Assembly: GCA_038087875.1 (NCBI GenBank)
Contig: CM075981.1
Coordinates: 992,001-1,056,000 of the forward strand
Reading direction: 5' to 3'
Length of the DNA stretch: 64,000 nt
From: Malacoraja senta
Taxonomy: Eukaryota
The position numbers and the translations under genes were made by a program. Position 1 is the first letter of the stretch; the number at the start of each line of letters is the position of its first letter. Under the pieces are notes generated by a model. It did not search any database. It was not told the origin of the DNA and was given only the letters and a program-made list of their open reading frames with translations. Shown piece after piece: positions 10,022-55,839 of the stretch.

Positions 10022-10068
10022 AATCGAAAGGCAAGAGATCTCACAGAGAAGATAACAATGAAACCCAG
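10022..10068 (+). CDS. Gene A region: 47-nt juxtamembrane cytoplasmic exon, copy 1 (xSKGKRSHREDNNETQ)
   Basis: TTTTCTAG acceptor and GTAAGG donor. Same length, phase (1 to 0) and NNExQ ending as gene B exon 5 (33143-33189). Confidence 0.7.
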
Positions 10069-10874
10069 GTAAGGATGTGAAGTGTGAATTGTCTGAATGT
10101 TTGAGAATATATAAACTAATATTATGTAGCATAACACAGGCCATTCAGCCCCACTAGTCCACTTCAACGTTAATACTAAACACCAATCGCTATGCATCCT
10201 TCTTCATCAAACCCCATCAACATCAACAAGGGTGGGACAGCTGGTAGAGCTGCTGCCTCACAGCGCCAGAGACCCAGGTTCGATCCTGACCTCGGGTGCT
10301 GTCTGTGTGCAGTCTTTACATTCTCCCTGCGACCACGTTTCCTCCAGGTGCTCTGGTTTCCACCCACATCCCAAAGACGTGTGGGTTTGTAGGTTAATTG
10401 GCTTCTGCAAATTGCCCCGAGCTTTTCGAGATGAGAAAACGGGATAACATAACATAATTCTTTATGGCTCTATATCACTGAGGTTCGATTAAAAACATCT
10501 CAAAGATTTCCAATGAGGTAGATGAGAGGTCAGGACAGCACTGAAGCTGATGTGTGGGACATCTTTTACCCAGGGGATAAAATGTTCCTAAATTACATCA
10601 ACAATGCTCAGAATTGTCTTTCCCTTGTGATAACGCATCCTCAGTAAATGCCCCTCTGATCTCTCGGGGCGACACGGTGGCACAGTGTATGCCCCGAGGG
10701 ATCTGAGACCCTGGTTCGATCCTGACTATTGGTGCTGTCTGTACGAAATTTGTACATTTTCCCCGTGACCACGTGGATTTTCTCCAAGTTCTTCGGTTTT
10801 CTCCGACACTCCAAAAACGTAGAGGTTTGTAGGTTAATTGGCTCGGTAAATTGGTTAATTGGCTTGGGAACACG

Positions 10875-11075
10875 CGGTATCCACGAGGACTTAGGCCTTC
10901 CGTGAACGCTGGTCGCCGCGGGAGGTAGAGTGTTTTGTTGACAAAGATGGCGATATACTCATTTGATGATCGTTTGTTTGTAAATTGTCAACATGGGCAG
11001 TCTTGGATTGTGTTAATACTCTGTATGTTTGTTTTTATTTTTTGAATAAAAGTATTTGTATAATAATAAAAAAAC
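10875..11075 (+). mobile_element. Tx1/L1-like LINE 3' end with A-rich tail
   Basis: Encodes AFRERWSPREVECFVDKDGDILI*, followed by AATAAA and an A-rich tail. A homologous inverted copy lies at about 51025-51215. Confidence 0.6.
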
Positions 11076-11179
11076 ACCTTGGACTGCACTCAGGGCTGAG
11101 CTGCGGCCACAGAGTGCTAGAGTAACTTAACGGGTTAGGCTACATCTGTGCAGGGAATGAATAGGTGACATTTAGGGTC

Positions 11180-11975
11180 AAGTTCAAGTTCAAGTTCACA
11201 TTTATTGCCACACGCATCAATTATGGTACAGTTAAATGTTATTTTCCATGCAGCCACACAATCAAAAAGAGCACAATACACAATAGAATACAACTTGAAC
11301 ATCCACCACAGTGGAATCAACATTCTTCACTGTGATGGAAGGCAATAACGTTCAGTCAGTCCTCCTCCTTTGTTCATCCGTGGTCGGGGCCATGCAGCCG
11401 CCACTACGGACGGCCCGATGTACAGGCCCTCTCTTCAGGATGCTCGAAACTCCGACGTCGGGACAGACGGACACTCCGCGGCTTGGAGGTCCCGAATCGG
11501 CCGCTTCCTACCGGATGTTATATGCCGCAGGCCGGCGGTCGGAGCTCTTCTCCGGCGATCCCCGGCGAGGGATCCCAGACTCCGCTAGAAGCTCCGCAGA
11601 CCGCGGCTTCAGGATGTTATAATCCGCGGGCCAGAGATTGGAGCACTTCTTCTGGTGATCCCCGGCAAGGGATCGCCCGGCTCCGCGATGGAAAGTCCGC
11701 ACTGCGCCCGCTGCTGAAGCTCTGGGCCCAACTCCGGGGGAGGCCGCTCCAATCTAAGCTGTTAGCCCATGAGGGAGGGTGAAAATGCGACTAGGAGAAA
11801 AGTCACATTCCACCGAGATAAGTGACTGAAAAACGGTTTCCCCCCTATTCCGCGCCCCAACCTCCCCACCCCCCCCCCCCACCCCCACACATAAATACAC
11901 TAAATCACACTAAAAACAAAAAAGTCGAAAGGACGGACAGCTGCTAGCGAGGCTGCCGGCTCGCGTCGCCACCCG
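11180..11975 (-). mobile_element. GC-rich ~0.8-kb non-autonomous retroelement with (AACTTG)n tail
   Basis: Homologous end to end with 27438-28270 (+) and partly with 13865-14270 (-). Confidence 0.7.
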
Positions 11976-12202
11976 ATGGTCACAACCGTTCTTCAAATAG
12001 TATCTGTGTGGGAAGGAACTGCAGATGCTGGTTTAAACCGAAGATAGACACAAAATGCTGACGTAACTCAGAGGGACAGGCAGAGAGAAGGAATGGGTGA
12101 TGTTTCGGGTCGAGACCCTTCTTCAGACTATTCTATATTGCCCCTAAGTATTCAAAATTTATCACCTCATTTCTCTGCAATAAAAGAATCTGCCATATGT
12201 CT

Positions 12203-13480
12203 AGGAAGGAATTGCAGATGCTGGTTTCACCTAGACCACAGCTAACAAATGTTTTTATCCAGCCCACAGCTAACATGGTTTTAACCAAAACCACAGCTAA
12301 CAATAGTTTTTTTCATCTAGACCCCAGCTATTTACAATTTATATTAATGAGCTGGATGAGGGAATTGAAAGCAACATCTCCAAGTTTGCGGATGACACTA
12401 AGGTGGGGGGCAGTGTTAGCTGTGAGGAGGGTGCTAGGAGACTGCAAGGTGACTTGGATAGGCTGGGTGAGTGGGCAAATGTTTGGCAGATGCAGTATAA
12501 TGTGGATAAATGTGAGGTTATCCACTTTGGTGGCAAAAACGGGAAGGCAGACTATTATCTAAATGGTGGCCGATTAGGAAATGGGGTGATGCAGCGAGAC
12601 CTGGGTGTCATGGTACACCAGTCATTGAAAGTAGGCATGCAGGTGCAGCAGGCAGTGAAGAAAGCGAATGGTATGTTGGCTTTCATAGCAAGAGGATTTG
12701 AGTATAGGAGCAGGGAGGTTCTACTGCAGTTGTACAGGGTCTTGGTGAGACCACACCTGGAGTATTGCGTACAGTTTTGGTCTCCAAATCTGAGGAAGGA
12801 CATTATAGCCATAGAGGGAGTGCTGAGAAGGTTCACCAGACTGATTCCTGGGATGTCAGGACTTTCATATGAAGAAAGACTGGATAGACTTGGCTTATAC
12901 TCGCTAGAATTTAGGAGATTGAGAGGGGATCTTATAGAAACGTACAAAATTCTTATGGGGTTGGACAGGCTAGATGCAGGAAGATTGTTCCCGATGTTGG
13001 GGAAGTCCAGGACAAGGGGTCACAGCTTAAGGATAAGGGGGAAATCCTTTAAGACCGAGATGAGGAAAAACTTTTTCACACAGAGAGTGGTGAATCTCTG
13101 GAACTCTCTGCCACAGAGGGTAGTTGAGGCCAGTTCATTGGCTATATTTAAGAGGGAGTTAGATGTGGCCCTTGTGGCTAAGGGGATCAGGGGGTATGGA
13201 GAGAAGGCAGGTACGGAATACTGAGTTGGATGATCAGCCATGATCATATTGAATGGCGGTGCAGGCTCGAAGGGCCGAATGGCCTACTCCTGCACCTATT
13301 TTCTATGTATCTATGTATCTATTCATTTGTTCTATATCTCTCTATATCACCGTCTATATCTCTCGTTTCCCTTTCCCCTGACTCTCAGTCTGAAGGGTCT
13401 CAACCCAAAATATAATCTATTCCTTTTCTCCACAGATGCTGTCTGACCCGCTGAATAACTCCAGCTTTTTATGTCTACCT
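12203..13480 (+). mobile_element. Composite: Penelope 3' piece/pLTR containing a CR1 3' RT fragment (about 12320-13320)
   Basis: Flanked by the direct repeat TCTGCCATATGTCT (12189-12202 and 13481-13494). ORF 12403-13224 is the CR1 ORF2 C-terminus (RPHLEYCVQFWSP, RGDLIETYKI, FFTQRVVNLWNSLP). Confidence 0.85.
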
Positions 13481-15519: not shown

Positions 15520-15566
15520 AATCCAATTGCAATACATCACAAGGTGAAGACAACAATGAAATCCAG
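15520..15566 (+). CDS. Gene A: 47-nt juxtamembrane cytoplasmic exon, copy 2 (xSNCNTSQGEDNNEIQ)
   Basis: TTTTCCAG acceptor and GTAAAA donor, phase 1 to 0. Splices in frame to 15985. Confidence 0.8.
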
Positions 15567-15984: not shown

Positions 15985-16260
15985 GAAATAGCAGTGTTGG
16001 AAGGAAACCACGTTGATGCAAATCTGCAGCAACTTGCAAAGATCAGGGCAGATGACCATTTGGATAACAATGAAGGTGAACGCACGTATGCAGTGGTGAA
16101 TTGTCAAAGGAAGTCGAGATCAAGGCAACATGTGGCTGAAAACGCTGTCGTCTACGCAGATGTCAATTTTCATCGCAACTACCCAAAGGGCACTCGGAAA
16201 CCCCACTCTCCTGGGACTCCAGAGAACCCCGAATCAATCTATGCCTCTGTTGTTTCTTAG
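15985..16260 (+). CDS. Gene A terminal exon: inhibitory-receptor cytoplasmic tail (EIAVLEG...VVYADV...SIYASVVS*)
   Basis: TTTTAG acceptor, phase 0, 91 aa to TAG. Colinear with gene B exon 6. ITIM-type motifs VVYADV and SIYASV. The upstream exons of gene A were not found in the window. Confidence 0.88.
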   Translation, partial: EIAVLEGNHVDANLQQLAKIRADDHLDNNEGERTYAVVNCQRKSRSRQHVAENAVVYADVNFHRNYPKGTRKPHSPGTPENPESIYASVVS

Positions 16261-19210: not shown

Positions 19211-19214
19211 AATA

Positions 19215-21101: not shown

Positions 21102-21159
21102 ATGGTCTCCGTGGATAAAACTATGTGGATTACAATCCTTCTCATTTATTCCCAGCCTG
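21102..21159 (+). CDS. Gene B exon 1, signal peptide MVSVDKTMWITILLIYSQP
   Basis: AACATGG Kozak context, in-frame second ATG at 21123, phase-1 GTAAGT donor. Paralogous to 40299-40356. Confidence 0.88.
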
Positions 21160-24100
21160 GTAAGTAACAGCTTGATTTGGACGTTCATGTGACCCGACTC
21201 TACGGGAAGTACGAGATAGTCACAAAGTGCTGGAGTAAGTCAGCGGGTCAGACTGAAGAAAAGTCTCGACCGGAAACGTGACCCATACCTTCTATCCAGA
21301 GATGCTGCCTGTCCCTCTGAGTTACTCCAGCATTTTGTGTCTATCTTCGGTGTAAACCAGCATCTGCAGTTCCTTCCTTTACATGTGCTGGAAATACTTA
21401 GCAGGTGTGTCGAGAAAAATAGTTATCCTTTCAGATCAGAGATCCTTCGACCTAAAACCTCACTCAATCTCTCTCCCCACAGATGTGGCCTGATCACCTG
21501 ATTATTTTTTTGTTTTTCATGTTACCAAAGACCTGGGTTCGATCCTGACTAAGGGGTCTGTCTGTACGGAGTTTGTACTTTCTCCCTGTGACCGCAAGAG
21601 TTTTCTCCCAGTGCTCAGGTTTCCTCCAACATCCCAAAGACGCACAGGTTTGTGGGTTAATTGGCCTCTATAAATAGGGAATATGGACTATGTAAATTAT
21701 CCCAAGTGTGTAAGATACTAGGTCAGCATGGACACGTTGGGCCGAAGGGCCAGGTTCCATGCTCTACCTTAAACTAAAGTAAACTAAACTAAAGTAACAG
21801 TGTCAAAGTGCAAAGGGACCCTTTCTATTTATAAAATATTGTTTTATTGCTTGCTTGCACTCACTAACAGCAGCCAAGCAATAATGCCAAAACAATTGTC
21901 TCCATTTTACAACACTTCCTCTTATTTAAAGTTCAGATATTAAATTGTTTGACTTCTCAGTTCCTCTTGGGCTGAGGCTTAATCTTGCAATAAGTAGACA
22001 TTTCCTTCTTGTTCTTGGACTTCAACCATGCATATTTGTCAAAGTCATCAGCATGCCATATTAATAATTTCTTGCGACCAAGTTATTTTTTTCAAATGTT
22101 ATTACTGATGCTCAGATGCATGAGCGAAGGCCAACATTGACTGTCTTCATTCACCAGATCATTTCAGGTAATCTAGGATCATTGCTTTACTAGTTTAGTT
22201 TAGTCCAATGAAGCCCAATTATTGATCGTTCAAGGGTGTAAATAGGAGGTCAGGACTGCGCTCTAGCTAGTGAGAGGATGGGTCAGTTGCCTGATAACAG
22301 TTGGGAAGAAAACTGCCTCTGAATCTAGAGCATTGGGTTCAGTTTCTGTACCTCGTGCCCAATGGTAGACAGGTAAAGAAGGAGTGACTGGGATGAAACT
22401 GGTCCATGATTATGCTGGTGGCCTGTAATGGTCAGCTGGATGGTTGACAGGGAGGAGAAGGCTTTTGACCCCAGGGCGGATATGGATGGACAAATCAGTA
22501 GGGCAGAAAAGTGGCAAAGACAGTTTAATCCAGAGAAGTGAGATCAAAATAAAGACATTAATAAATCGATGTTGAGGGAGTGTGGAGGAACAGAAGGACA
22601 TTGAAGAATATTCTCACAGCTCATTAAATGCAACATGACAATTAGTTACTTTAGAGATACAGCCTGGAACAGGCCCTTCGGTCCACCATTTCGAAGCCGA
22701 CCAGCGACTAGTTCTATCCTACACCCTTGGGGTAATGTACAGAAGCCAATTAACTTACAAACCTACTCATCTTTGGATTGTGGGAGGAAACTGGAGCACC
22801 CAGGGGAAACCCATGCGGTCACAGGGAGAGCGCACAAATTCCATACAGACAGCACCTGTAGACAGGATCAAACCCGGGTCTTTGGCGCTGTAAGGCAGCC
22901 ACCCTTCTGCTGTGCCACTGTGCTGCCCAACTAGTGTAAACAGTTAGGACCAAATAACTGCAGGTGCTGGTTTGTACCAAATATAGAAACAAAGTGCTGG
23001 AGTAACTTAGAAGGGTGTCTGAAGAAGGGTCCCAATCCCGAAACGTCACGCATTCTATTTCTCCAGACATGCTGCCTGACCCGCTGAGTTGCACCAGCAC
23101 CTTGTGTCTATCTTTAGTGTGAAGAGGTGCTTCATGGTCAGCGTGGACTCGGTGGGCCAAAGGGCGTGTTTCCATGCTGTATTTTTCAATCAATTCAATC
23201 AATAAAAAAAAGTCTTATGATCATTGAATTCTCCAATTTTTCATTGCACACCCCTACCCTCTCTCACTTTTCTGTGCCGGCCCCACCCAGATGTGCAGCC
23301 ATTTAACCCATGCATCTTCCTCCCTTCCCCCCTGTCCCCTACCAAATATACCCCTCCCTCTGCCTTTACATTTCGCTTCACTTCTCTCGTTATCTGACAA
23401 CCTTTTGACTGCTTTTCACCTCCAGTCTTTGTCCACCCATGAACAAATCAAAATTCCCCCCTCAGCTGTCTCCACCAAACACTTGTTATGCTGCCTGTCC
23501 TGCTGAGTTACTCCAGCATTTTGTGTCTACCTTCCACCTGTCACTTGCCAGGCTTTATCCCATCTCCACCTCTCTTCCAGCTTTCCCCACCCTATTTTAA
23601 TCAGGCTGAAGAAGGGTCCCAACCCGACACGTCACGTGTCCATTCCCTCCACAGATGCTGCCAGATCTGCTGAGTTACATCGGCACTTTGTGTTTGACTC
23701 AAGGGTAAGTGAATGTCCAGACACGGGTTGGACCATTCGGCCTATCGTTGGTTAGGGGAAGAGTGGGTGAGCCAGCAAACGCTGTGTTAAGTATTAAAGA
23801 AGGAACTGCAGATGCTGGAAAATCGAAGGTACACAAAAATGCTGGAGAAACTCAGCGGGTGCAGCAGCATCTATGGAGCGAAGGAAATAGGCAATGTTTC
23901 GGGCCGAAACCCTTCTTCAGACTGATAGGGGGTGGGGAGATGAAAGGAAAAAAGGAAAAGCGGCAGAGGAGGAGCCAGAGGGCTGGGGGAGGGGAGGAGA
24001 CAACCAGAGGGCTGATGAAGGGGAGGGGCCAGCAACGGCTAGCAGAGTTGGGAGAATTCAATGTTCATGCCCCAAGGATGTAGACTGCCCAAGCGGAATA

Positions 24101-27100
24101 TGCGGTGCATTTCCTCCAATTTCCGGTGTTGCTCGCTGTGCCCATGGAGGAGACGCAGGACAGAGAGGTCAGATACGGAATGGGAGGGGGAGTTGAAGTG
24201 CTGAGCCACCGGGAGGTCAGGTAGGTTATTGCGGACCGACCGGAGGTGTTCGGCAAAACGATCGCCAAGCCTCCGCTTGGTCTCACCGATGTAGATCAGC
24301 TGACATCTAGAGCAGCGGATGCAAGAGATGAGGTTGGAGGAGATGCAGGTGAACCTCTGTCGCACCTGGAACGACGGCTTGGGTCCTTGAATGGAATCGA
24401 GGGGGGAGGTGAAGGGACAAGTGTTGCATCTCTTGCGGTTGCAAGGGAAAGTACCCGGGGAGGGGGTGGTACGGGAGGGAAGGGAAGAATTGACAAGGGA
24501 GTTACGGAGGGAGCGGTCTTTGCGGAAGGCAGACATGGGAGGAGATGGGAAGATGTGGCGAGTGGTGGGGTCACGTTGGAGGTGGCGAAACTGACGGAGG
24601 ATCACTTGTTGTATGTGACGGCAGGTGGGATGAAAGGTGAGGACGAGGGGGACACTGCCCGTGTTGTGAGTGGGGGGATGGGGAGAGAGAGCAGTGTTGC
24701 GGGGTATGGCAGAGACCCTGGTGCGAGCCTCATCTATGGTGGAGGAGGGGAACCCCCGTTCCCTGAAGAATGAGGACATTTTGGATGCCCTGGTGTGGAA
24801 CGCCTCATCCTGGGAGCAGATGCGGCGTAGACGGAGGAATTGAGAGTGGGGGATGGAGTCCTTACAGGAAGCAGGGTGGGAAGAAGTGTAGTCCAGATAG
24901 CCATGGGAGTCAGTAGGTTTGTAGTGGATGTCGGTATGAAGTCTATCACCTGCGATGGAGATAGTGAGGTCAAGGAATGGTAGGGAAGTGTCGGAAATGG
25001 TCCAGGTGTATTTGAGTGCCGGATGGAAGTTGGTGGTGAAGCGGTTGAAGTTAGTCAGTTGTGTGTGGGTGCAGGAGGTGGCACCAAAACAGTCATCGAT
25101 GTAGCGGAGGTAGAAGTCGGGGATGGGGCCCTGGTACGTATTGAACAAGGATTGTTCTATGTACCCGACAAACAGGCAGGCGTAGCTGGGGCCCATGCGT
25201 GTGCCCATAGCTACGCCTTGTATTTGGAGGAAATGGGAGGAGTCAAATGAGAAGTTATTGAGGGCAAGGACCAGCTCCGCTAGTGGGAGGAGGGTGTCAG
25301 TGGCCGGGTATAGGTTGCTTCTTCGGTCGAGGAAAAACCGGAGGGCTTCGAGACCATCCTGGTGGGGGATGGAGGTGTGCAATGACTGGATGTCCATGGT
25401 GAAGATGAGGGGGTGAGGGCCTAGAGAGTGGAATACGCGCAGATGACGGAGAGTGTCAGAGGTGTCTTGAACATAGGTAGGGAGGGATTTAACCAAGGGG
25501 GATAGGATGGAGTCGAGGTAGGCGGAGATGAGTTCGGTGGGGCACGAACAGGCAGAGACAATCGGTCTACCGGGACAGTCAGATTTGTGGATTTTGGGGA
25601 GAAGGTAAAATCGGGCCTTGCGGGGCTGGGGAACGATGAGGTTGGAGGCTCGGTCGGGCAAGGCGTGGGAGTGGATGAAGTCGGTGATGGTGCTGGAGAT
25701 GGTGGCCTGGTGCTCGTTAGTGGGGTCATGGTCCAGCGTTATGTAGGAGGAGGTGTCCGAGAGTTGGCGCGTGGCCTCAGCTTTGTAGAGATCGACGCGC
25801 CAGACTACCACGGCACCTCCCTTGTCGGCGGGTTTGATAACCCAATCTAGGTTGTTGCGGAGTGAGTCGATGGCAGTGCGTTCAGGGGGGGAGAGATTGG
25901 AGTGAGACAGGGGAGTGGAGAAGTTGAGGCGGTTGATGTCACGGCGGCAGATTTTGATGAAGAGTTCTAAAGCCGGAAGGCTACGAGGGGGGTTCCACGA
26001 GGAGGGGGTGCGTTGGTGATGGGGAAAAGGGTCATCAGTGGGGGGCGAGGACTCCTTCCCATGGAAGTGCGCTGTGAGGCGGAGGCGACGGTAGAAGCGT
26101 TCCAAGCCAAGGAGGGCGCGGAACTCATTGAGGTGGGGACGGAGGGGGGCAAAGGTAAGAACTCTGCTGTGGACAGACCGTTCGATGTCGGAGAGGGGGA
26201 GGTCGGGGGGGGGGGGGTGGTGAACACCCAGCAGGGATGGGGTTTGGGGCCGGAGGAAGGCAGGTGGGTGGAATGGGGACAAGGCGATGTGTGGTGGGGG
26301 GGTGGTGGTGGGTGTTGGGGGGGGGGTGGGTGGTCAGAGGGTGGGGGGGTGAGAGGGCTGTAGTGTGGGTGGGGAAGAGAAGGGGTCCCATAGTTGGAGA
26401 AGGATGGGGAACTAACACTGAGGTAACCAGAAATAGGCAGACTAGCGCTAGGACCCAGTGGAGTGAAACCCAGGAGGGTGGGAGTGAGCAGCGTGGAGGC
26501 TTCAGGCCCAGTACACAGACCAGTCTGCAGGTGAGGCGACGGCTGCGGGCTGCTGGAGGGAGGTTCAGTGGCGAGGGTCGGCGGACCCGACGGTAGGAGT
26601 CCTCGAGCAGTGGAGTCGGGGTCGGCGGGGCTAGTAGATTTGTGTTAAGTAGATTTGTCCTGTACATTTTCTGAAGATTTTTCCTCTCAGTTTCAGGTGG
26701 ACTGTGGGCAAAGAAATATGTAGGAGGAGTTGTGGGAACAAATATCACAATCGATTGTCACTATAATGCACGGTACCGCTCACACATTAAATACTGGTGT
26801 CATGGGTGGACTATCGCGTGTTCAATTGTAGTGAAAACAAATGGGCAACGCGGACGGAGCGGAAGAGTGTCAATCACAGATAACCAGACACAAGGAATAT
26901 TTACTGTGACTGTGGAGGGTCTTTACTATGGAGATACAGGATGGTACAGATGTGGAATTACTACACCTGGCGTTGATACATTGTTTAACGTTCATCTCCA
27001 AGTATCTGAAGGTACGTTTTACATTTATACCAAGCCAATTAACCGGTAAACCTGTACGTTTTTGGAGTGTGGGAGGAAACCGAAGTTTTCAGAGAAAACC

Positions 27101-36780: not shown

Positions 36781-38564
36781 TATACAGACGGCACCCGTAG
36801 TCGGGATCAAACCTGGGTCTTTGGCGCTGTAGGCGTTGTAAGGCAGCAACTCCACCGCTGCGCCACCGTGCTGTGGAGCAGAAGGGCCCAGATATCCATG
36901 TACATGAATCATGTACATAGACATGCACACAGAACTAATACAAAGGTGATAGGTGGTCAGCATAGTGGGCCAAAGAGCCAGTTTCAACACTGTATTTAAA
37001 CTAAACTAAAAATTCAGCAGTCTGTAGTCTGAAGAAGAAGGGTCTTGACCCAAAACATCACCTATTCCTTTTCTCCAGAGATGCTGCCTGACAAGCTGAG
37101 TTACTCCAGCTATTTGTGGCTAATTTTGAGGAGATTCTACTGCTTGTGCATCTGCCTCACAGCTCTAGTCGTCTGGGTCGAATTCCAAACTTCATTGCTT
37201 TCTGTGTTAAATTTGCATGTTCTCCCTGTGACAAATTTGCATTGTTATCACCTGGATTCTCCAGTGTCCTCCCACATCCCAGAGCATGCTAGGTGGTAGG
37301 ATAACTGGCAACTGTAACATGCAAGACAATAGGTGAAGGGATGTAGGATGGGGACAGATGAATGGGAAATCTCCCAAAGCTGGTAAGGAATCGATGGGCC
37401 AAATGGGCTCAATATATTAACAGGGTTTGACAGGGTAGCTGCAGGGATGAAGCTTCTCCTGTTTATAAGGTGCATTTGACCCAAAATATGAGGTCAGTCA
37501 TTCAAGAATGGGACAAGAAGCCTCTTTTTACAAAGAACATGGTGAATCCTTGAAGTTCTCACCAGGAGGCCATCGAGGCTCAATCACAATAAAAATCTAT
37601 ATTTTTATTAGAAATTATAGGAAACAAGGGATATGGAATCAGTTCCCAAAGTGGTGCTGTGTCAGCCATGATGCATTGAGTGGCGGAGTAGATACAAAGG
37701 GCCAAATGATCTACTGAAGATGGACACAAAGTGTTGGAGTAACTTTGCAGGTCAGGCAGTATTTCTGGAGATAAAGGATAGGTGACATTTCTGGTCGAGA
37801 CCCTTCTTCAGACTATACTCTTGCTTTATGTTGTGTTCAAACTATGAGCACTGCATGGTATGATTGTTGGCACAGTGCTGTTATCTTAGTTGAATGTTGT
37901 TTCGAACAATAAAGGAAGTTAGATTAGGTGCTCTGTTTTGTTAACAGCAATACAGAGAAGAAGCCCCCATAGCCTACAAGTTGACAGCTTTTTCTCCATC
38001 ATCCTGTGGCACAGTGGCGCAGCTGGTAGAGCTGCTGCCTCACATCGCCAGAGACCCAGGATCCATAAATCTCTCAGCTACATTGTCCGACATGATCTCA
38101 CTCTCATAAATGCACATGACCCTGTCCCAATTGCTTGCTAAGATCATATAAACTTTTCCTTGAAAAAATTAACGGAAGTGAGATGCTGAAATAATCTATT
38201 TTGTATTTCCCATGCGGAGTGTCTCACTTCTCTGTTTTTCTTTCTGAGAAAATATATTGAAGGCGTTCAAAACACGTTTCCTCCCAGAGATCCTTACTAA
38301 TTGAACGTGCCGAACCTAATGAGTATTGAACTCAGACACAATCATTTGATGACCGCTATTAGTTCTTTACTGATTGCTTGTCCAATCGTACATCTACTGT
38401 ACCAGGGCCAAGACACAACTCCAAGCGATGCTTTCAAGTGGTTAGTAATTCTTATCGCCACACAGGCTGACTTTAAGGGCAGCAATCTGCCTTGAAATAG
38501 ATTAAAGTGAGATATAATGAATTCATTATTTTCTTTGTCCTTTATTAACACAGTGTCCGATTGT

Positions 38565-39205
38565 ATACCAATCTCCCTTCCATTGACTCCATCTACACTA
38601 CACGTTGCCTTGGCAACGCCTCCAGCATAATCAGGGATGAGTCACACCCTGGACACTCCCTCTTCTCCCCTCTCCCATCAGCCAAGAGGTACAGACATGT
38701 AAAAACGCATATCTCCAGATTCAGGGTCAGTTTCTTCCCAGCAGTTATCAGGAAACTGATAGAGGTTCTAACCTCCCATCTACCTCAATGTAGACAGTCA
38801 GACTATCTTTACCCGGTCTTCACTGGACTTTATCTTGCATTAAATGTTATTCACTTTATCCTGTATCTGTACACTGTGGATGGCTGTTAGTAATCATGCA
38901 TAGGTAGGCAAAAGCGGTGGTGAAACTCAGCAGGTGAGGGAGCATCTATGGAGCGAATGAATAGGTGACGTTTCGGGTCCCGACCCAGGGTCTCGACCCA
39001 AAACGTCGCCTATTCCTTCACTCCATAGATGTTGCCTCACCCGCTGAGTTTCTCCAGCATTTTTGTCTACCTTCGATTTTTCCAGCATCTGGAGTTCTTT
39101 CTTAAACAGTAATCATGCATAGTCTTTCTGTTGACTGGAGAGCATGCAACAAAAAGCTTCTCACTGTACCTTGGTACACGTGACGATAAACTAAACTAAA
39201 CTAAA
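38565..39205 (+). mobile_element. Rex1-like LINE 3' fragment interrupted by a palindromic pLTR unit (38904-39107, 15-bp TSD)
   Basis: LPSIDSIY...SHPGHSLFSPLPS..RYR...SFFPAVIR. TSD AGTAATCATGCATAG at 38889-38903 and 39108-39122. (AAACT)n tail. Confidence 0.8.
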
Positions 39206-39434
39206 CTTGCCAACTGGACTGTGAATGACATCCTGGCCAAAGGTTTTGTGAAATGAACAAGACATTTTTAAAAACTTACAATGTTGTTGAGGTTTAGTCT
39301 GAAATCCAATCCCCCTTCCAACCAGTAAGGCTTGCTGGGGAAGTCTAACTTTTGGCAATTGTGGGTCAGGTTTATACTGGGTTACTTAGCTGGTTGCGAG
39401 AATCAAACTTGGAATGAAGCAAAACCCCTCAGGA

Positions 39435-39728
39435 ACAGTGGTGCAGCGGTAGAGCTGCCATCTCACAGCGCCAGAGACCTGGATTTGATCCTGACATCAT
39501 GCGCTGCCAGTGTGGAATTTGCATGTTCTCCCTGCAACAGTCGGGTTCTCTCCAGGTGCTCTGGTTTCCTCCTACATCCCAAATATGTACAGGTTTGTAG
39601 GTTCATTAGCATCTGTAAATTTCCCCCAGTGTGTAGAATGTGAAAATGGGATAACATTGAACTACAATGGTGTAGAATTGGTTGGCCCAAAGGGACTGTT
39701 TCCATGCTGTATCGCTAAACAAAACTAA
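39435..39728 (+). mobile_element. HE1-like SINE
   Basis: Matches the SINE consensus. Further copies at about 10232, 10664, 27035(-), 30005(-), 31260(-), 42003(-), 42705, 46730, 50374, 52615(-) and 55965(-). Confidence 0.8.
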
Positions 39729-40298
39729 ATCGGCCACCATTAACAAGCTCCAGACATGAGATGAGACTCGCCTTGAGATCAAAGTCCAGGCCAGGATCAC
39801 ACCCATCACAGTTCAGAACAAATCCCGCCCACATCGGCATGTCTTGCCCACCACAAGTTGCCCGCCAATGAGCCATTCCTTGTCCAAGGGTGATCAGAGA
39901 GATGGGAGTGGGTCTGTGCTACCTGTCCTGAAGACCTCTGTAGCCAACATGCAGCATAGACATGGTGGTCCTCTCTCAACTACAGAAAGAGATGATTCCA
40001 CAGGTGTTGGCACAATCCCTTCTGACGTTGTCCAGTTATCTGGACCTCGTACGTTCATGAGTCATGGGAGGAGCATGGAGTCATAGGGTAACTGCATTCT
40101 ATCATATGATGAAAATTCACTATAGATTCATGCAATTATTTATTCCCAGGGAGAACTTCTAGCTGTTTGTCATCAATTGGCTCACTCTTGTTTCACAATC
40201 AGGTTTCCTGTTGCTTTCTTCATCATTTATATTGTAACATTTATTTTCGATGGGCATTTAGTTCTCTGGACTAAGAGCTGAACGATAAACGGCCCAGC

Positions 40299-40356
40299 AT
40301 GGGGTCTGCATCTAAAACGATGTTGGTGCCAATTCTTCTCATTTGTTTCTTGCCCG
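40299..40356 (+). CDS. Gene C leader exon L1, signal peptide MGSASKTMLVPILLICFLP
   Basis: AGCATGG Kozak context, second ATG at 40320, phase-1 GTGAGT donor. Same length and promoter motifs as gene B exon 1. Confidence 0.85.
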
Positions 40357-43300
40357 GTGAGTAACATTCAGAATTGGACATTCTGATAATTAGTATTAGT
40401 TTGCGCGTTATGCTGTTTCCATTGCCGAGATGAAGTGTTATTAATGTTTAATGTTTTATGTATCATTCCTAACTGTCACTATGTCATGTTGTCACTTGCG
40501 GGCGGAGCACCAAGGCAAATTCCTTGTATGTGAATACTTGGCCAATAGACTTATTCATTCATTCAGATCGTTAAAAATGTGTAGACACGTAAAGATGCAA
40601 AATGTTCAGCACATAATAATATGACCAGTATTGGAATATAGTCTCGTAAATACCTTCCCTCTGTAACACGGTACTACACAAATCATCACAATGTATCCAA
40701 TGTATACTTCAAATAGCCCTTGCTTTACCTTTGTCTCCATCACCTCCTCCTTCCAAGTTCTCCCACCAGTCTTACTGTCTCTGACTACATTCTATCTCTG
40801 TCCTGCCCACTCCCCTGACATCAGTCTGAAGAAGGGTCTCCACCCGAAACGCCACCCATTCCTTCTCTCCAGAGATGCTGCCTGTCCCGCTGATTTACTC
40901 CAGCATTAGTGTCAACCAGCGACATGATTATTGATTTCTCTAACTGCAAGGAACCCTTGCATTCCCTCTCTCTCCGTCCCTCCCCCACCCTAGTCTTCTT
41001 GCTAATTTCACCGTTTTTTATTCCTTCGTTATCACCTCATCCCCAGCAACAATGGACCATTGTGGACTCCACCTTTCTTGAGTTATAGATGCAGGCTCTG
41101 CATTGTTCTGAGGGCTGGATTTACTTATAACCTTGACAAGCTTAAGCTTAGGGCCTCGAGATCTAGGGGGGGGGGGGGGGGGGGGCTCGCAGAGCCGGAT
41201 TCACCACTAGTTGAAGCCTAGGGCCTCAAAATCTAGGGGGCTGCGGCCAAGGCAGGACACCTGCCGTTCAATTCTGGGCAGGCCGCCCATTCTATCTCTC
41301 TCTCTGTGTCACTCTCCGTCTCCGCCCGCCATCCGTATCTGTGTCCGGGCCGCCGGGACTCCGCTCTCCGCTCGCTCCTCATCTGCCGTCACGGCCGGCC
41401 TCCTTGCACATGCGCACTGCTACGGCCAGCACATTCTCCCCCTTGCACATGCGCACAACCACGGCCAGCACATCATTAGCCGCCCTGCGCATGCGCACTG
41501 TGATGGCGCTGGGCACTTTCCCCCAACCCAAAACGTCACCTATCCATGTTCTCTGGAGATGCTGCCTGGCCCATTGAGTTACTCCAGCATTATATGCCTG
41601 TTTTTGAGAAATAGGAAGTTGTGAGGTTGATAAGAAGATTTGAACACCAGTGTAAATATTTTGAAACCAAATCATTGACTCTACACGTTAGGGTTGTTAT
41701 GACTATGCAGGGTGGGTTATCAGATCTGTGAAGTGTGGAGAACCATGGTCAAGTCCAAATCCACCCACATGTCACAGTGCCAGGGTGAAGGGTGAGTGGG
41801 GCAGAGCAGGGCGGGGCACTGGCACCAGAGTTAAACTCATAGTCATATAGCACAGAAACAGGCCCTTCTTCCCAACTTGACCATGCTGACCAAACTGCTT
41901 ACCTACACTAGGTACACAAAAATGCTGGAGAAACTCAGCGGGTGCAGCAGCATCTATGGAGCGAAGGAAATAGGCAACGTTTCAGGCCGAAACCCTTCTT
42001 CACTAGTTTAGTTTAGAGATACAGCATGGAAACTGGCCCTTCAGCTCACCGAGTCCGCACCAAACAGCAATCCCCATGCATTAACACTATCCTACACGCA
42101 ATAGGGACTATTTACACCTGTTCCAAGCCAACTAACCTACAAACCTATACGTTTTTGGATTGTGCGAGGAAACTGAAGATCTCGGAGAAAACCCAGGGGG
42201 AGAACGTATAAACTCTACAGACAGCACCCGTAGTCGGGATCAAACCCGACTGTAAGCGCTGTAAGGCAGCAGCTCTACCACTGCGCCATGGAGCCGCCCT
42301 AGTCAACGTACCAGTTGCCCGCGTTTGACCCATCTCCTTTTTATTCTGCCATATATTGGTAAACATCCAGTTTTCAACCTCAGTCAGGAAGTAGTGTCTC
42401 GGCCGGAAAACAAACATGCACTTTTTGCCTCCACAGATGCTGCCCGACCCGTTGAGTTTTTCAGGTGTTCTGCCTATTGTTCCAGATTCTAGTACATACA
42501 ATCTCCTTTGTCTTCTCCTTCACACAACCCTAATCCTACCTCAACAATGTTATCTCACAGAAGCTGAAGGGTACATGGAAGGAGCATGTCCAGAGGAGGT
42601 AGTGGAGACAGGTACTATTAACAACATTTAAAAGCACTAGGACATGGTACGTAGATACGAAAGGTTTGTACGGACAGGGGTCAAACGAAGGCCTGATTTT
42701 TATGGTTGCGAAGCCGTAGAGTTGTTGCCTTACATTGCATAACGGCGCCAGATACCCGGGTTCGATCCTGGCTACAGGTGCTTGTCTGTACATAGTCTGT
42801 ACTTTCTCACAGTGACCTGCGTGGCTTTTCTCCGAGAACTTCAGTTTCCTCCCACACTCCAAAGACGTACAGTTTTGTAGGTTAATTGGATTGATGGAAA
42901 TGTAAAAATTTGTGTTAAAGTGCGGGGATCACTGGATTGTGCGGACTCGGTGGGCTGGAGGGCCTGTTTCCGCACTGTATCTCTAAACTAAACTAAACTA
43001 AAGAGGGACTAGCGTACATGGGACATCTTGATCGGCATAGGGCAAGCTGCTTCCATGCTGTATCACTCTATGATTTCATGAATCGCATCCTCAAACTAAG
43101 CTTTACCCAGTCTCCAATGCTCAAGTATTTGAATTGTCCTTCGAGGAGTTTATCTGGTGATGTGAGTGGACTTATCTGATCGTGTTTGTCAATAAACAAT
43201 AGACAATAGGTGTAGGAGTAGGCCATTTGGCCCTTCGAGCCAGCACCGCCATTCAATGTGATCATGGCAGATCATCCACAATCAGTACCCCGTTCCTGCC

Positions 43301-44009
43301 TTATCGCCATATCCCTTGACTCCGCTAACTTTAAGAGCCCTATTTAGCTCTCTCTTGAAAGTATCCAGAGAACCGTCCTCCACCACTCTCTGAGGCAGAG
43401 AATTCCACAGACTAACAACTTTCTGTGTGAAAGTGTTTCCTCATCTCCGTTCCGTTGGTGTCTTATTTCTCCTGCGTAACGTTTCAACACATGAGAAGCT
43501 GAGGAAGGCTGGACAAATTAGTGACGCGCATTTTGAGGTGGGTAAACAGATCACAAGTTCACACGTTCCAGGAGTAGAATTTGGCCATTCAGCCCATAGA
43601 GTCTACTCCGCCATTCAAACATGGCTGATGTCTGCCTCTTAAACCCATACAAGTTCAGACACAGTGTGCCCGCATTTGGGGAAGGGGGTTGAGGGTGTGG
43701 GTAAGAGAATGTTTGCAGTGGTGGACAGAGCGCCAGTGAAGTGGGCAAACGTCACCAGGATGAAGCAAAGCTTCGAGGAGATGCTCCAATCCAGGCAACT
43801 GGAGAGCATTGCAGCCCACTCCTGATAGGTGCATTGTCGGTGGTGAGGAGGCTGGGGGTGGTGGCAAATGAGTCACCAAGTTATTCTTGAACCACTGTAA
43901 AGTCGTTTCCTGAGTAAACGGAAATTGCCTGTTTGACTTCTGTTGTGAATGAGGAAGAGGACAACTCAAACGCAGTGCAGGGACCAAACCGATCCAACGT
44001 AGCCAAGAC

Positions 44010-44106
44010 ATGGTGGTGGGACAGGGAGAATTCACCCACCAGAAACGGCCCAGATCCAGGGGAACAGTCGCTCTGCTGGTTCTTGTCGCTTTTGATCTCA
44101 TACCAG
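44010..44106 (+). CDS. Candidate second leader exon L2, MVVGQGEFTHQKRPRSRGTVALLVLVAFDLIP
   Basis: GACATGG Kozak context, basic n-region plus hydrophobic h-region. Ends Pro plus a phase-1 G and a GTAAAT donor, as the other leaders do. In frame with V exon 54038. Confidence 0.55.
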
Positions 44107-45094
44107 GTAAATCGTTGTTTTACAAAATGCTCTGTTCTTTAGAATTATTTACTGGTGCCTTGAATTATTTGTAACCAAGGACGTCTGTCTCTGTACTGTG
44201 TGGGGAGCTGATGATAAATTGCTCAACACTCGTTAGTTCCTGTAGAGACTTCCATCAGCGGTTGTTGTCGTGTTGTGTGCAGCCAAATTGCACACAGCTA
44301 GCTCCCCGTGGAGAAGGGAGATAACTACCTAAAGCTTGCCTTGTGGACCTCACTGAAACTTACCGAATAGTGAAAGGCCTGGATAGAGTGGATGGGGTGA
44401 GGATGTTTCCACTAGTCGGATAGTCTAGGACCAGAGGTCGCAGCCTCAGAATTAAAGGACATTCCTTTAGGAAGGAGATGAGGAGGAATTTATTTAGTCA
44501 GAAGGTGGTGAAACTGTGGAATTCATTGTCGCAGAATGCTGTGGAGGCCGTCAATAGATATTTCATAGGCAGAGATAGATAGATTCTTGATCAGTACTGG
44601 TGTCAGGAGTCCTGGGGAGAAGGAAGGAGGATTGAGTTGAGAGGGAAAGGTAGATCAGTCATGATTGAATGGAGGAGTAGACTTGATGGGCAAAATTACA
44701 TAATTCTGCTCCTAATGTACTAATGAACTTATGATCTGTTCTTCAGAATTATTTACTAGCACCTTGAATTATTTTGAGCCACAGAGCAGACTACTGGGCT
44801 ACGCGCTGCTCAAGATAAAGTGCTTGCACACTTGTTCTTTCCTGCACTAATGACTTGTTGTGATGCTGTGCGCAGTCAAATGGCACACCGCTAACTCCCT
44901 GTAGAAAATGACCCGACAGCTGGCCTTGTTGATTATGGGTGTAGGGGTAACTCTTGCCCTCAGAACAGAGAGTTTGCTCCACTATTCTGGTGCAAACTAT
45001 CTCCAGGTGAACTTTCTCAGTGACTTGACAGCAGATCAGCTAAATGCTTTACCCCTTGCATATCTCTTGACTTCCTCCATCCCTGACTCTTGGT

Positions 45095-49980: not shown

Positions 49981-51365
49981 TATGTTTGGTAACCCTTCTG
50001 TCCCCTTTGTCAAATGCAACTTCTGCCAATGTCACTGATTATCAAAGCCATAATTTATGGTCTTGAACTCAATGTCTTTCTGGGCCATTACAGGCAGCCA
50101 ATTAGTGGTCACACATTTTGGTGGGTGTGGAAGGTGGGGGAGGGAGGGGGGGATGGGGCTGAGGCAGGGGCAGGTAGGTGACAGGTACACCCGGAGAAAG
50201 TGAGGGATGATGGGAGGAAGATGAGGAGGGGGGAGATTTGAGACTAGAGGCCAGTATGTGGTAGGGGAAAAGTACAAGGGAATAAACAGGTTCAAATGAA
50301 TTAGATGGAGATATCTGATGGTGAGTAGACTTACCGAGCAACAATACATCCAACACTACCACACTCTCTCTGTGGGCAGCACGGTGGCGCAGGGGTAGAG
50401 TTGCTGCCACACAGCTCCAGATACCCAGGTTCGATCTTGACTACAGGTGCTGTCTGAACGGAGTTTGTACGTTCTCCCTGTGACCATGTGGGTTTTTTCC
50501 GCATGCTCCGATTTCCTCCCACACTCCAAAGACGTGCAGGTTTGTAGGATAATTGACTTCACTAAAAATGTACATCGTCCTTAGTATGTGTAGTGGGATA
50601 GAGTTAGCTAGCTAGCGTGGACTTGATGGGCAGAAGATCCTGTTTCTGCGCTGTATCTTGAAAGTAAAGTGTAAAGTCAGTTCTTCAAGGCAGATTCATC
50701 CTAGATCTCTGTAGTGGAAAGAAACCCTAGAATGTACTGACCCGGGTGGGGGGAAGTACAGTCATGGCTGGTCCAACAATGACAATGACTGCACTTCAGA
50801 CTAAAATCAATGGGGAACAAGGGCTGAAAAGGGCCATGCATGGAGAGGGAGCGCAAATTCGTGGATGATCAAGGAGGCTTCCCCTCCCCTGCCATTACCA
50901 CCCCCCCCCCACCACCATCCCTCTCTGCCAGCTTTCCCCTTCCTACTAAAGTTTGCCTGGATAAAGGTCCTGACCCGAAACGTCACCTGCCCATTCCCTC
51001 CACAGATGCTGCCTGATCTGCTGAGTAACACTTTTTAAAAATACAAATACTATTACTCAGAAACAAAACAAACATACAAAAAAAAGTAACACGATCAAAA
51101 CTGCCCTTTGTAGCATTTTACAAAACAACAGCCATCAATTTAAAAATAACGTGGTCATCATCGGTATTACATTCGACCTCCCGCGGTGACCAGCGTTCAC
51201 GCAAGGCGTCCAAAGTCGCTGAGTTACACCGGGACTTTGTGATTAGCGCAAGGGTAAGTGAATGTCCAGACATGGGTTGGACCATTCATCGTTGGTTTGG
51301 GCAAGAGAGGGTGGGCCAGCAAACGCTGTGATAAGTGGATTTGTTCCTGTACATTTTCCTCTCAA

Positions 51366-52951
51366 TTTCAGGTGCACTGTTGGCAAAGCAATATACAAGA
51401 GGATTTGTGGGATGAGCGATCACAATCGATTGTCATTTTGGAGATGAGTAGCGCTCACACACAAAATACTGATGTCTTTGGAGGAGTCAGTTTAAGAAGG
51501 AACTGCAGATGCTGGAAAGTCGAAGGTAGACAAAAATGCTGTAGAAACTCAGCGGGTGAGGCAGCATCCAGGGGGCGAAGGAAATAGGCGACGTTTCGGG
51601 TCGAGACCCTTCTTCATACTGATGTGGGGTGGGGGGACGCGAACAAGAAAGGAAGAGGAGGAGACAGTGGGCTGTGGGAGAGCTGGGAATGGGAGGGGAA
51701 AGAGGGAAAAAGCGGGACTACCTGAAATTGGAGAAGTCAATGTTCATACCGCTGGGGTGAAAACCACCCAAGCGAAATGTGAGGTGCTGCTTCTCCAATT
51801 TACAGTGGGCCTCACTCTGGCCATGGAGGAGGCCCAGGAAAGAAAGTTCAGATTCTTAATGGGAGGGGTAGTTGAAGTGCTGATCCACCGGGACATCAGG
51901 TTGGTTATTTCGAACCGAGCAGAGGTGTTAGGTGAAGCGATCGGCAAACCTACGCTTGGTCTCGCCGACGTAGAGCAGCTGACACCGAGAGCAGAGGATG
52001 TAATAGATGAGGTTGGAGGAAGTGCAGGTGAACCTCTACCGCACCTGGAAAGACTGCTTAGGTCCTTGGATGGAGTCAAGGGGAGAGACAAGTGTAGCAT
52101 TTTGCTGCGGTTGCAAGGGAAAGTACCAGGGGAGGGGGTGGTTTGGGTGGGAAGGGACAAATTGACCAGGGAGTTACAGAGGGAACGGTCTCAGCAGAAA
52201 TCGGAAAGGGGAGGAGATGGGAAGATGTGGCCAGTGGTGGGATCCCATTGGAGGTGGCGAAAATGTCGGAGGATTATCTGGTGTATGTGACGGCTGGTCG
52301 GGTGGAAGGTGCGGACAACGGGGACTCTGCCCTTGTTATGTGGGGGGGGGGGTGGGGAGTGAGAGCAGAGTTACGTATAGAAGAGACCCTGGTGAGAGCC
52401 TCATCTATAGTAGAAGAGGGGAACCCCCGTTCCCAAAAGAATGATGACATCTCTGATGGTTGGAGGAGCCCACCTCCAACTGGGCAGTTTACACCCCAGC
52501 AGTATGAACATTGACTTCTACAATATCAGGTAGTCCGCTATCTCCTTCTTTCCCCTACCCTTCCCAACTCTCCCACAGCCCACTGTCTCCGCCTCTTTCT
52601 TTCTTCTACCCAGCACGAAACAGGCCCTTCTGCCCTCCATGTCCACCAGCGATCCCCGCACATTAACACCATCCCACACCCACTCTGGACAATTTTTACA
52701 TTTTTTACCAAGCCAATTAACCTACAAACATGCACGTCTTTGGAATGTGGGAGGAAACCGAAGATCTCTGAGAAAACCCACGCAGGTCACGGGGAGAACG
52801 TACAAACTCCGTACAGACAGCACCCGTAATAAGGATCGAACCCAGGTCTCTGGCGCTGCATTCGTTGCAAGTCAGCAACTCCACCGCTGCACCACCGTGA
52901 CTGCCCAAACAAATGGGCAACATGGACGGAGTGGAAGAGTGTCAATGACAG
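51366..52951 (+). pseudogene. Dead partial V exon (51366-~51492 and ~52907-52951), split by Penelope and SINE insertions
   Basis: Acceptor mutated (CTCAA instead of CTCAG). Reads SGALLAKQYTRGFVG*AITIDCHFGDE*RSHTKY*C (three stops) and resumes as TNGQHGRSGRVSMT. Confidence 0.88.
51493..52610 (-). mobile_element. Penelope 3' fragment with an inverted pLTR-side piece at its 5' end (about 52465-52610)
   Basis: SNPSKDL...SSALGVSCSTSARP frames of the GIY-YIG region. 52465-52610 is the reverse complement of about 51650-51780. Confidence 0.82.
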
Positions 52952-54037: not shown

Positions 54038-54358
54038 TTTCAGGTGCGGTGTGGGGAAAGACATATGTAGGAGGAGTTGTGGGAAGAGCGGTCACGGTTG
54101 ATTGTCACTATGAAGCAGAGTACCGCTCACGCCCAAAATACTGGTGTCACGGGTGGACTCGCCAGTGTGGAGTTTTATTGGAAACAAATGGGCAACACGG
54201 ACGGAGAGGAAGAGCGTCAATCACAGATAACCCGACACGAGGAATATTTACTGTGACTTTGGAGGATCTTCGCTCTGGAGATACAGGATGGTACAGCTGT
54301 GGAATTGCTGCACTTGCCTTGGATCCATTGTTTAACGTTCATCTCCAAGTATCTGACG
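54038..54358 (+). CDS. Gene C V-type Ig exon (CD300/pIgR/MDIR-like)
   Basis: CCTCTCAG acceptor and GTACGT donor, 321 nt, phase 1-1. Contains TVDCHY, KYWC...C and DTGWYSC. 71/107 aa identical to the gene B V domain. Confidence 0.94.
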
Positions 54359-55123
54359 GTACGTTTCTCAGCGATTGACGACGTCTCCACTGAAAAGCCT
54401 GATCCATGTTTTCTCCGGGAAGGGTCAGGGCAGCACCGATATCCCGAGGCTCCGCAGCAGTGCAGAGACCTGCGGGAGCGGGCGGGGGTCGGGAAACTCA
54501 CTCGTGTTGCTCTCACCCATTGCGGGTTCTGTCCCACTGAGCGGCCACCCACTTCAAGTGGGATGCTCAGCACATATCCCTGCCTCTGAACTGTGTTAAA
54601 TGTTACCCTGTTAGAGGTTTGAGTTCCCACTCAAACTAATAATCCGACGGGAACAGATCAGTGAGAAACAAGTCGTCTGGTCTGAATATCTGGAGAATCA
54701 TAAACAGGGAATCAGTCCCGTGAGTTCAACAGACTGAGTTCAATCCTCCAGGGGCAGGCCAGCACACCCCGCCCCCACCTCAGGGATCACACACTCCCTC
54801 CCCACCCAGCGGTCTCTCTCTCTCTCTCCCTCTGTCCCGTCAATGCGCCCACCCCGATATCAGCACCAATGGGTTCCCTTCCGGTTGCAGGTCACTTAAT
54901 CCAAGCGCAACTATAGCCTCTCTCTATACCCACCCGAACATTGGACAGATGTACGACACGTGAACAAAACCATGAGTGCTGGAAGAACTTAGCGGGTCAG
55001 GTAGCATCTGTGGAGGGAATGGACAAAACCAACTCGAGTCATGACCCTCCTTCAGACAGACGGAATAAGGGAGGAGAAAGCTGGAATTGAGAGATGGGAA
55101 CGACACCTAGGGGGGAGGGGGGG

Positions 55124-55126
<3 letters not shown>

Positions 55127-55170
<44 letters not shown>
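55127..55170. repeat. (GA)n microsatellite
   Basis: Read directly. Confidence 0.95.
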
Positions 55171-55174
<4 letters not shown>

Positions 55175-55536
55175 ATATATATGCGGGCGGGGGGGGGGGG
55201 GCGATAGTGAGGTATTGTTTGAAATCCTGAATACAATGTTCATACCGTTGCGTTGTCCGATTGTCAGGGGGAATATAAGGTGCTGTTTCTCTTTCAAAAT
55301 CGTTTTGGCAATGGAGATAAAGGGTGGAATGGGAATTGGAAGGGGACTTAAACGATTAGCAACCAGGATGTCCAGGCTCGCTTTTGTAAAGGCCGAGGTC
55401 ATATTGCGAGCACCGAAGGCAGGGGACGAGGTTCGCGTGTACCTCTTCAAAAGTCGAGGTACAAGGGTGCCAGAATGGGAGAGTCTTTTATTTTCAGATG
55501 TTGACTTTGTATCCATTGTTTGCTCCTTTCCCACAG

Positions 55537-55839
55537 AACCTGTGTCTGTTCCTGTGCTTGAATTACTGTCACCAGCCAATGTCTCCTGTGTCGGAATGAC
55601 AGTGTCCTGTAAGTCTGAGCGGGGATCTCTTCCCATTAGCTACACCTGGTATGAAAATACCTCAAAGATATCAAATAGCAATAACCTGGATCTACGTTGT
55701 CAATCCTTCAAACACCAACGCCAACAATATTACTGCAAAGCCTCAAATAATCGTGGGACAAAGTCCAGTGAAATGGTTACCGTGGCAGTGTCCAACTCCG
55801 GAGAGAATTGCAGTTGTGTGATGCATTTCGGTAACAATG
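55537..55839 (+). CDS. Gene C C2-type Ig exon, Cys-rich
   Basis: CCCACAG acceptor and GTAAGT donor, 303 nt, phase 1-1. EPVSVPVL...VSCKSERGSLPISYTWY...YYCKASN pattern. Confidence 0.9.

Follow-up and report, generated by a model that had tools for sequence, protein, structure and literature searches.

Three MDIR-type receptor genes or gene fragments in a 64-kb stretch of the genome of the skate Malacoraja senta

[quoted passage not shown] The family belongs to the innate immune receptors and was reportedly first described in skates in 2006. An MDIR ectodomain contains a variable number of immunoglobulin (Ig) modules, with a V domain resembling those of CD300, pIgR, and TREM that is found with or without further Ig domains (PMC3031540). 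A stretch of 64,000 nt from Malacoraja senta (CM075981.1, positions 992,001-1,056,000; hereafter the window, from whose start all coordinates are counted) was found to hold three MDIR-type genes or gene fragments (A, B, and C) on the same strand inside 46 kb, as in a multigene cluster. The window very probably represents a section of a large skate MDIR cluster, with gene A as the 3' end of a receptor of the MDIR3 type, gene B as an apparently intact inhibitory receptor, and gene C as the 5' part of a gene broken by an assembly gap. All three are added members of the known family and are no novel kind of receptor.

The window was searched with the proteins of V-like open reading frames (ORFs) against its DNA, with Pfam, by self-comparison, by tblastn, and against solved structures (PDB) and UniRef. 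From UniRef came the named proteins of the clearnose skate (Rostroraja/Raja eglanteria), which are MDIR2 (P0187), MDIR3 (P0177), and MDIR5 (P0191). The protein-against-DNA search, run with the two open V-like frames, revealed two intact V-set exons on the forward strand, one broken V exon, and one further Ig exon at ~55.55 kb. The DNA is rich in transposons and is interrupted by a single gap of 200 N. Most repeats in the self-comparison are copies of short or long interspersed nuclear elements (SINEs and LINEs) or of Penelope-like elements, and the introns of the genes are littered with Penelope-like elements and SINEs. Two sets of low-copy matches (18810-18875/33444-33510 and 7952-8069/31079-31176/40438-40553, one of the latter lying in intron 1 of gene C) were considered as shared exons and rejected, having neither an open frame nor a splice context. 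The features of the three genes and of the DNA around them are collected in Table 1.

Table 1. Receptor exons and other features of the Malacoraja senta window (TM, transmembrane)
Feature	Position	Strand	Remarks
Gene A, distal 47-nt cytoplasmic exon (A1)	10022..10068	+	phase 1 to 0; AG/GT borders
Gene A, proximal 47-nt exon (A2)	15520..15566	+	AG/GT borders; encodes SNCNTSQGEDNNEIQ
Gene A, tail exon and stop	15985..16260	+	ITIMs VVYADV, SIYASV; degenerate YAVV
Gene B, whole	21102-34051	+	six exons; closed 900-nt frame, 299 codons; all splice junctions AG/GT
Gene B exon 1, start codon and leader	21102..21159	+	phase 1; GT donor
Gene B exon 2, V-set Ig	26691..27011	+	Pfam V-set E 4.3e-11
Gene B exon 3, Ser/Thr-rich stalk	28462..28570	+	ends in phase 2; AG/GT borders
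Gene B exon 4, TM helix, then KRRQR	30586..30671	+	frame closes across exon; zero charged residues in TM
Gene B exon 5, 47-nt cytoplasmic	33143..33189	+	aligns with A1 and A2; AG/GT borders
Gene B exon 6, tail and stop	33773..34051	+	TVYATL, TVYAGV, VTYSEV, SIYATV
Penelope-like retroelement	23794..26640	-	2.85 kb, in intron 1 of gene B; ~50 nt upstream of its V exon
Left arm of inverted duplication	37254..44685	+	collinearity with Rhinoraja L001 extends to either side of the arm
Gene C exon 1, leader	40299..40356	+	95% identity to leader of Rhinoraja P0010
V pseudo-exon, 5' part	51335..51475	+	three in-frame stops
V pseudo-exon, middle fragment	52894..52950	+	3' half missing
Gene C, V-set exon	54038..54358	+	Pfam V-set E 2.9e-10; phase 1-1; AG/GT borders
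Gene C, C2-type Ig exon	55537..55839	+	phase 1-1; AG/GT; Pfam Ig_2 E 9e-7 (Ig_2/Ig_3)
Assembly gap, 200 N	56368..56567	.	ends gene C as assembled
Right (inverted) arm	56568..64000	-	begins at gap, runs off window end

Gene B is the complete member of the group. A preliminary description of this stretch had read it as a V domain, a stalk, a TM helix, and a tail with tyrosine motifs, and this layout was borne out by a single closed frame across the six exons. The leader is 79% identical to the leaders of Leucoraja P0001 and Amblyraja P0011, and the stalk has 57-62% identity to those of P0001 and P0008. Four cysteines are found in the V domain (positions 23, 37, 44, and 88), of which the inner pair aligns with the extra pair of pIgR D1. 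In the tail, VTYSEV and SIYATV are immunoreceptor tyrosine-based inhibitory motifs (ITIMs), TVYAGV fits the pattern of a switch motif (ITSM), and TVYATL is ITIM-like. The sequence features of ITIM-bearing inhibitory receptors, whose motifs follow (S/I/V/L)xYxx(I/V/L), were thus found as an uncharged TM together with ITIMs in gene B and as VVYADV and SIYASV in gene A. The gene B model is colinear with the C-terminal part of XP_078277136.1 (P0026) from Rhinoraja longicauda, at 74% identity over 288 amino acids; over the TM and tail the identity rises to 83%. Through this Rhinoraja orthologue the tail of gene B was aligned to that of MDIR2. Read from its sequence, gene B apparently encodes an intact type I membrane protein of 299 amino acids with a signal peptide, one V domain with an extra C-C' disulfide, a stalk, an uncharged TM, and an ITIM tail.

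Further observations concern the DNA in and around gene B and the Penelope-like family. Reading through the stalk donor at 28571-28598 gives YNFHLLKF and then a stop, which is exactly how P0001 ends; this may represent a conserved secreted isoform or merely a conserved intron start. In a run search, three sequencing runs were found to contain 20-49% of the words sampled from 26600-28700. Fragments of the Penelope-like family were also seen at 14704-15090, 29039-29578, 46957-48137, and 51491-52458. The Penelope-like element in intron 1 itself carries an ORF of 747 amino acids (24039-26282, reverse strand) with a Pfam RVT_1 match at E 2.4e-5, below the gathering score, and a GIY-YIG motif (IYIGET...EH). 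Because its flanks (23717-23793 and 26641 onward) are contiguous in the V unit of gene C, the element is an insertion upstream of the gene B V exon.

Gene C shares the leader of this gene type and has an Ig exon of a different class after its V exon. The preliminary description had placed a C2 Ig exon directly behind the V exon, and such an exon was recovered with its end at exactly the position it had given, 1.18 kb 3' of the V exon. The best match of this C2 domain among solved structures is FCRL5, and it is 82.5% identical to Amblyraja P0175, 80% to Leucoraja P0188, and 71% to MDIR2. The V domain is 80% identical to that of MDIR2 and 80.6% to that of P0188. At the junction of the two domains the protein would read VSD|EPVSVPVL, a junction also present in MDIR2 and in many relatives with annotation. 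A V pseudo-exon, split by a Penelope-like fragment (51491-52458) and a SINE, stands between the leader and V exons. A relaxed tblastn search found no stalk, TM, Arg-TM, or tail exon for gene C after the C2 exon or elsewhere in the window.

The Rhinoraja locus that encodes protein P0010 (L001) is collinear with 36926-54673 of the window, and in both the order runs from upstream DNA through promoter with leader and an old V fragment to the V exon. Past the V exon, L001 continues with a stalk exon and then an Arg-TM exon, and C2 is absent. Because L001 is collinear and carries an Arg-TM exon, an activating-type gene is the positional orthologue of gene C. About 8 kb downstream of the P0010 gene, at L001 26326-26682, a divergent V exon was observed that has ~35% identity to the V domains of the window and shares their YWC...C pattern. 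This exon is probably part of another receptor subfamily adjoining the MDIR cluster.

Gene A is represented by two 47-nt cytoplasmic exons and a tail exon. The tail is 79% identical to residues 611-701 of MDIR3 and 82% to Amblyraja P0175 by tblastn. The peptide encoded by A2, SNCNTSQGEDNNEIQ, nearly matches its MDIR3 counterpart, SNCNTSHGEENNEIQ. With its flanks, A1 has 72.5% DNA identity to A2 and 73% to the 47-nt exon of gene B. The two exons stand as tandem copies ahead of a single tail exon. Either copy alone keeps the frame into the tail exon; joined together they shift it, with a stop after 17 codons and a tail without ITIMs. No leader, V, other Ig, or TM exon of gene A, including one of the MDIR3 type, was found in the window by relaxed tblastn. 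LINE-type reverse transcriptase and endonuclease frames (915-4844, reverse strand, and 6453-7891, forward strand) fill the 10 kb upstream of A1, and the TM exon may lie outside the window because of them. As part of the overall reading given above, and with the same high confidence, gene A is taken to be the 3' end of a multi-Ig inhibitory receptor of the MDIR3 type, whose Ig and TM exons would lie upstream of the window.

The modules of the three genes overlap in pairs. The V exons of genes B and C are 84% identical in DNA over 368 nt (26652-27019 against 53999-54366) and 67% in protein, and their leader exons with ~120 nt of upstream DNA are 69% identical over ~205 nt (20984-21186 against 40181-40383). 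Genes A and B are alike in their 47-nt exons and tail exons, and the 47-nt exon with its flanks recurs at 9968-10166, 15468-15664, and 33090-33237. The preliminary description had given all three paralogs common leader, promoter, V-exon, and tail-exon templates. Leader, promoter, and V exon were found to be shared by B and C, and tail exons by A and B; no set is common to all three, since the window lacks a leader, V, or TM exon for gene A and a stalk, TM, or tail for gene C. Upstream of the start codons of B and C (20990-21100 and 40190-40295), and likewise in Rhinoraja L001 (9890-9995), the conserved blocks TTTCACAATCAGG.TTCCTGTT and GGACTAAGAGCTGA were observed. These are candidate shared promoter elements, and their TTCC cores would fit ETS-type sites.

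Downstream of gene C, a further feature complicates the assembly. The two inverted arms of Table 1 are ~7.4 kb long and 99.06% identical, with 49 substitutions and 12 small indels between them. The right arm duplicates the gene C promoter and an identical leader (60955-60898, reverse strand), and no V exon lies downstream of that copy. This inverted copy of the leader region, the 200-N gap, and the V pseudo-exon were all absent from the preliminary description. The first base of the right arm directly follows the gap and falls within a repeat copy, which on the left arm extends to ~44734. What bounds the right arm on its inner side is therefore the end of a contig, not a breakpoint. Since it starts within a repeat at the gap and runs off the window end, and since the left arm is the syntenic one, the right arm is probably an assembly artefact, either a misjoined or a haplotype contig; a real recent inverted duplication is the alternative. 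The 3' end of gene C was most likely lost at the gap. After the gap an inverted, near-identical contig would have been joined, so that the stalk and TM exons of gene C are missing.

The placement of the V domains agrees with the identity of the genes as MDIRs, which had been proposed from the letters alone. Database searches returned only elasmobranch proteins, including the named MDIR2, MDIR3, and MDIR5, beside uncharacterised proteins and others labelled 'CMRF35-like', 'pIgR-like', or 'FcR-like'. The expectation that relatives in other skates and rays would carry only generic 'CMRF35-like' or 'pIgR-like' names was thereby confirmed. A tree of 75 V domains was built, and PDB E-values were used for mammalian CD300, TREM, and FCMR, which stood outside it. 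Both V domains of the window fell within a single chondrichthyan MDIR-type clade that holds all V domains of MDIR2, MDIR3, and MDIR5 (Shimodaira-Hasegawa approximate likelihood-ratio test, SH-aLRT, 97) and is separate from the pIgR-like V domains of turtle, bichir, and conger and from a distinct Leucoraja pIgR-like protein (P0040). A position outside the CD300/pIgR/MDIR group, which had been set beforehand as the refuting outcome, was not seen. Within the clade, the V domain of gene C groups with that of P0188 and with V2 of P0175 (SH-aLRT 85), and the MDIR2 V domain is among the nearest rows. That of gene B falls in a clade of nine members (SH-aLRT 96), the others of which sit on Arg-TM anchors or in multi-domain inhibitory proteins.

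Further features of the family were found in the exon layouts. The ectodomains vary in their Ig modules, with one V domain in gene B and a V domain followed by an FCRL-like C2 domain in gene C. On the signalling side, where the family comprises ITIM-bearing inhibitory and charged-TM activating forms, ITIM tails are present in A and B; an Arg-TM exon was not found in the window, and an activating end for gene C would follow from the Rhinoraja locus only. The preliminary description of the stretch as a paired-receptor MDIR locus holds as regards the MDIR locus. Pairing is not seen within the window, where the signalling ends of A and B are both inhibitory.

Several explanations other than the reading given above were weighed. 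It is barely credible that pIgR or the mammalian CD300 genes have their skate orthologues here and that the genes are not MDIRs, although 'polymeric immunoglobulin receptor-like' and 'CMRF35-like molecule' are database names given to relatives and pIgR heads the solved structures (followed by CD300LF, CD300A, a CD300 relative, NKp44, TREM2, TIM, and FCMR). The rank of pIgR arises because its score is summed over five V domains; per single domain, CD300LF (E 2.7e-18 with the gene B V domain) and CD300A (E 1.2e-16) outscore the lone pIgR D1. Moreover, the window genes have one V domain, or a V domain with an FCRL-like C2, and not four or five V domains in tandem, and their exons are 71-80% identical to those of the named MDIR2 and MDIR3, with which the tree groups them, apart from bony-vertebrate pIgR-like V domains and P0040. 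It is also quite improbable that gene B is not one gene, with its leader, V, and stalk exons yielding a secreted or truncated product and its TM, 47-nt, and tail exons left over from another, decayed receptor. Such a split is favoured by the Leucoraja erinacea model P0001, which ends in RYNFHLLKF, a read-through of the stalk donor whose nine residues are also encoded in the window intron, and by other skates (P0008), in which a stalk of the gene B type joins an Arg-TM exon and not an ITIM tail. However, the stalk exon ends in phase 2, in agreement with the TM exon, and the full frame of 299 codons closes. The Rhinoraja model has the same order of V, stalk, TM, 47-nt exon, and tail at 74% identity, and the downstream exons ("all four") are undamaged and have canonical splice sites, a state that would not be expected if they were a decayed remnant.

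For gene C, it was considered that the gene is dead or fragmentary, being a leader, a broken V exon, and an orphan V-C2 unit without an anchor, and that it lost its 3' end to a real rearrangement, seen as the inverted 7.4-kb duplication. The window holds no stalk, TM, or tail exon after the C2 exon, a V pseudo-exon lies within the first intron, and the 49 substitutions and 12 indels between the arms could mean a real recent duplication. This account is nevertheless unlikely, given the start of the right arm precisely at the gap and within a repeat running on in the left arm, the collinearity of the left arm with Rhinoraja to either side, and the undamaged V and C2 exons, whose splice phases are conserved. 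A further set of points weighs against the cluster reading preferred here. Protein P0026, on which the gene B model leans, is itself a fusion of two neighbouring genes, passing from an MDIR3-type TM exon straight into the V exon of the next gene; the order of A then B is therefore also present in Rhinoraja. One of the four tyrosine motifs of gene B is not kept there (VTCSDV in Rhinoraja), and the tail of gene B is only ~32-37% identical to that of MDIR2. A secreted V-stalk product is possible because P0001 ends by read-through of the stalk donor. No activating (Arg-TM) exon was found anywhere in the window, the closest full-length relatives of gene C by identity (P0188 and MDIR2) are inhibitory, and it is from synteny alone that gene C takes its signalling type. 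In general, the exon joins are predicted from splice signals, from the frame, and from homology to gene models that were themselves predicted by computer, and ligand binding, expression, and signalling of the window genes are all predictions.

Taking the window as a section of an MDIR cluster, the following course can be proposed. Tandem duplication and exon (module) shuffling would have given rise to the genes. By analogy with CD300A, CD300LF, and other ITIM receptors, the V domain of gene B would bind a ligand, upon which Src kinases would phosphorylate the tyrosines of the tail. The phosphorylated tail would recruit SHP-1, SHP-2, or SHIP and so damp leukocyte activation. Gene C would be the activating partner, with an Arg-TM pairing with an adaptor that carries an immunoreceptor tyrosine-based activation motif (ITAM), as suggested by synteny only. 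In other skates, the V-stalk module of the gene B type is joined to Arg-TM anchors. It can be put forward tentatively, as a joint claim somewhat less probable than its opposite, that gene B and its Rhinoraja orthologue represent a single-V, ITIM-tailed MDIR form distinct from MDIR2, MDIR3, and MDIR5 (MDIR1 and MDIR4 lay outside the comparison), and that the C2 exon of gene C is a module difference, gained or lost, between the closely related window skate and Rhinoraja.

The locus provides exon-level maps of three MDIR neighbours, with one clean example of an inhibitory single-V receptor. A C2 module that differs between two skates at one locus illustrates exon shuffling in a birth-and-death receptor family. 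These results add detail to a known family and open no new question. They also carry a warning against reading biology into the 3' end of gene C, or into the inverted copy next to the 200-N gap, before the assembly has been checked.

Compared with named receptors, MDIR2 (416 amino acids) resembles both gene C and gene B. It has the same V-then-C2 order as gene C with the same junction (VSD|E..SVPVL), and the same layout of TM, 47-nt exon, and tail as gene B. Unlike MDIR2, gene C as assembled is without stalk, TM, and ITIM tail, and gene B is without a C2 domain. MDIR3 (701 amino acids) has the order V-V-C2-V-C2-TM-tail, and its Amblyraja radiata counterpart is the 'pIgR-like' protein P0175. 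Both resemble gene A in their 47-nt and tail exons, which are 79-82% identical with the ITIMs VVYADV and SIYASV kept. Gene A differs from MDIR3 in having two tandem 47-nt exons and in its first ITIM, which reads RTYAVV in place of ITYAVV, and only its 3' end lies in the window. The Rhinoraja longicauda CMRF35-like molecule 5 (P0010) resembles gene C in its promoter, leader (95% in amino acids), old V fragment, and V exon, all in the same order; unlike gene C, it passes from the V domain straight to a stalk and Arg-TM, without C2.

Among receptors of other vertebrates, pIgR has five V-like domains in mammals and two in teleosts. A tandem array of V domains only was found in neither window gene, as gene B has one V domain and gene C a V domain followed by C2. 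The CD300 receptors, whose ligands include lipids, have one V domain, which contains a second (C-C') disulfide. Gene B has such a domain (E 1e-16 to 3e-18), with its inner cysteine pair aligned to that of pIgR D1. Mammalian CD300A and CD300LF resemble gene B in having a single V domain with four cysteines, a stalk, a TM, and several ITIMs, a likeness that does not imply orthology. Unlike CD300, the skate family also has FCRL-like C2 modules and multi-V forms.

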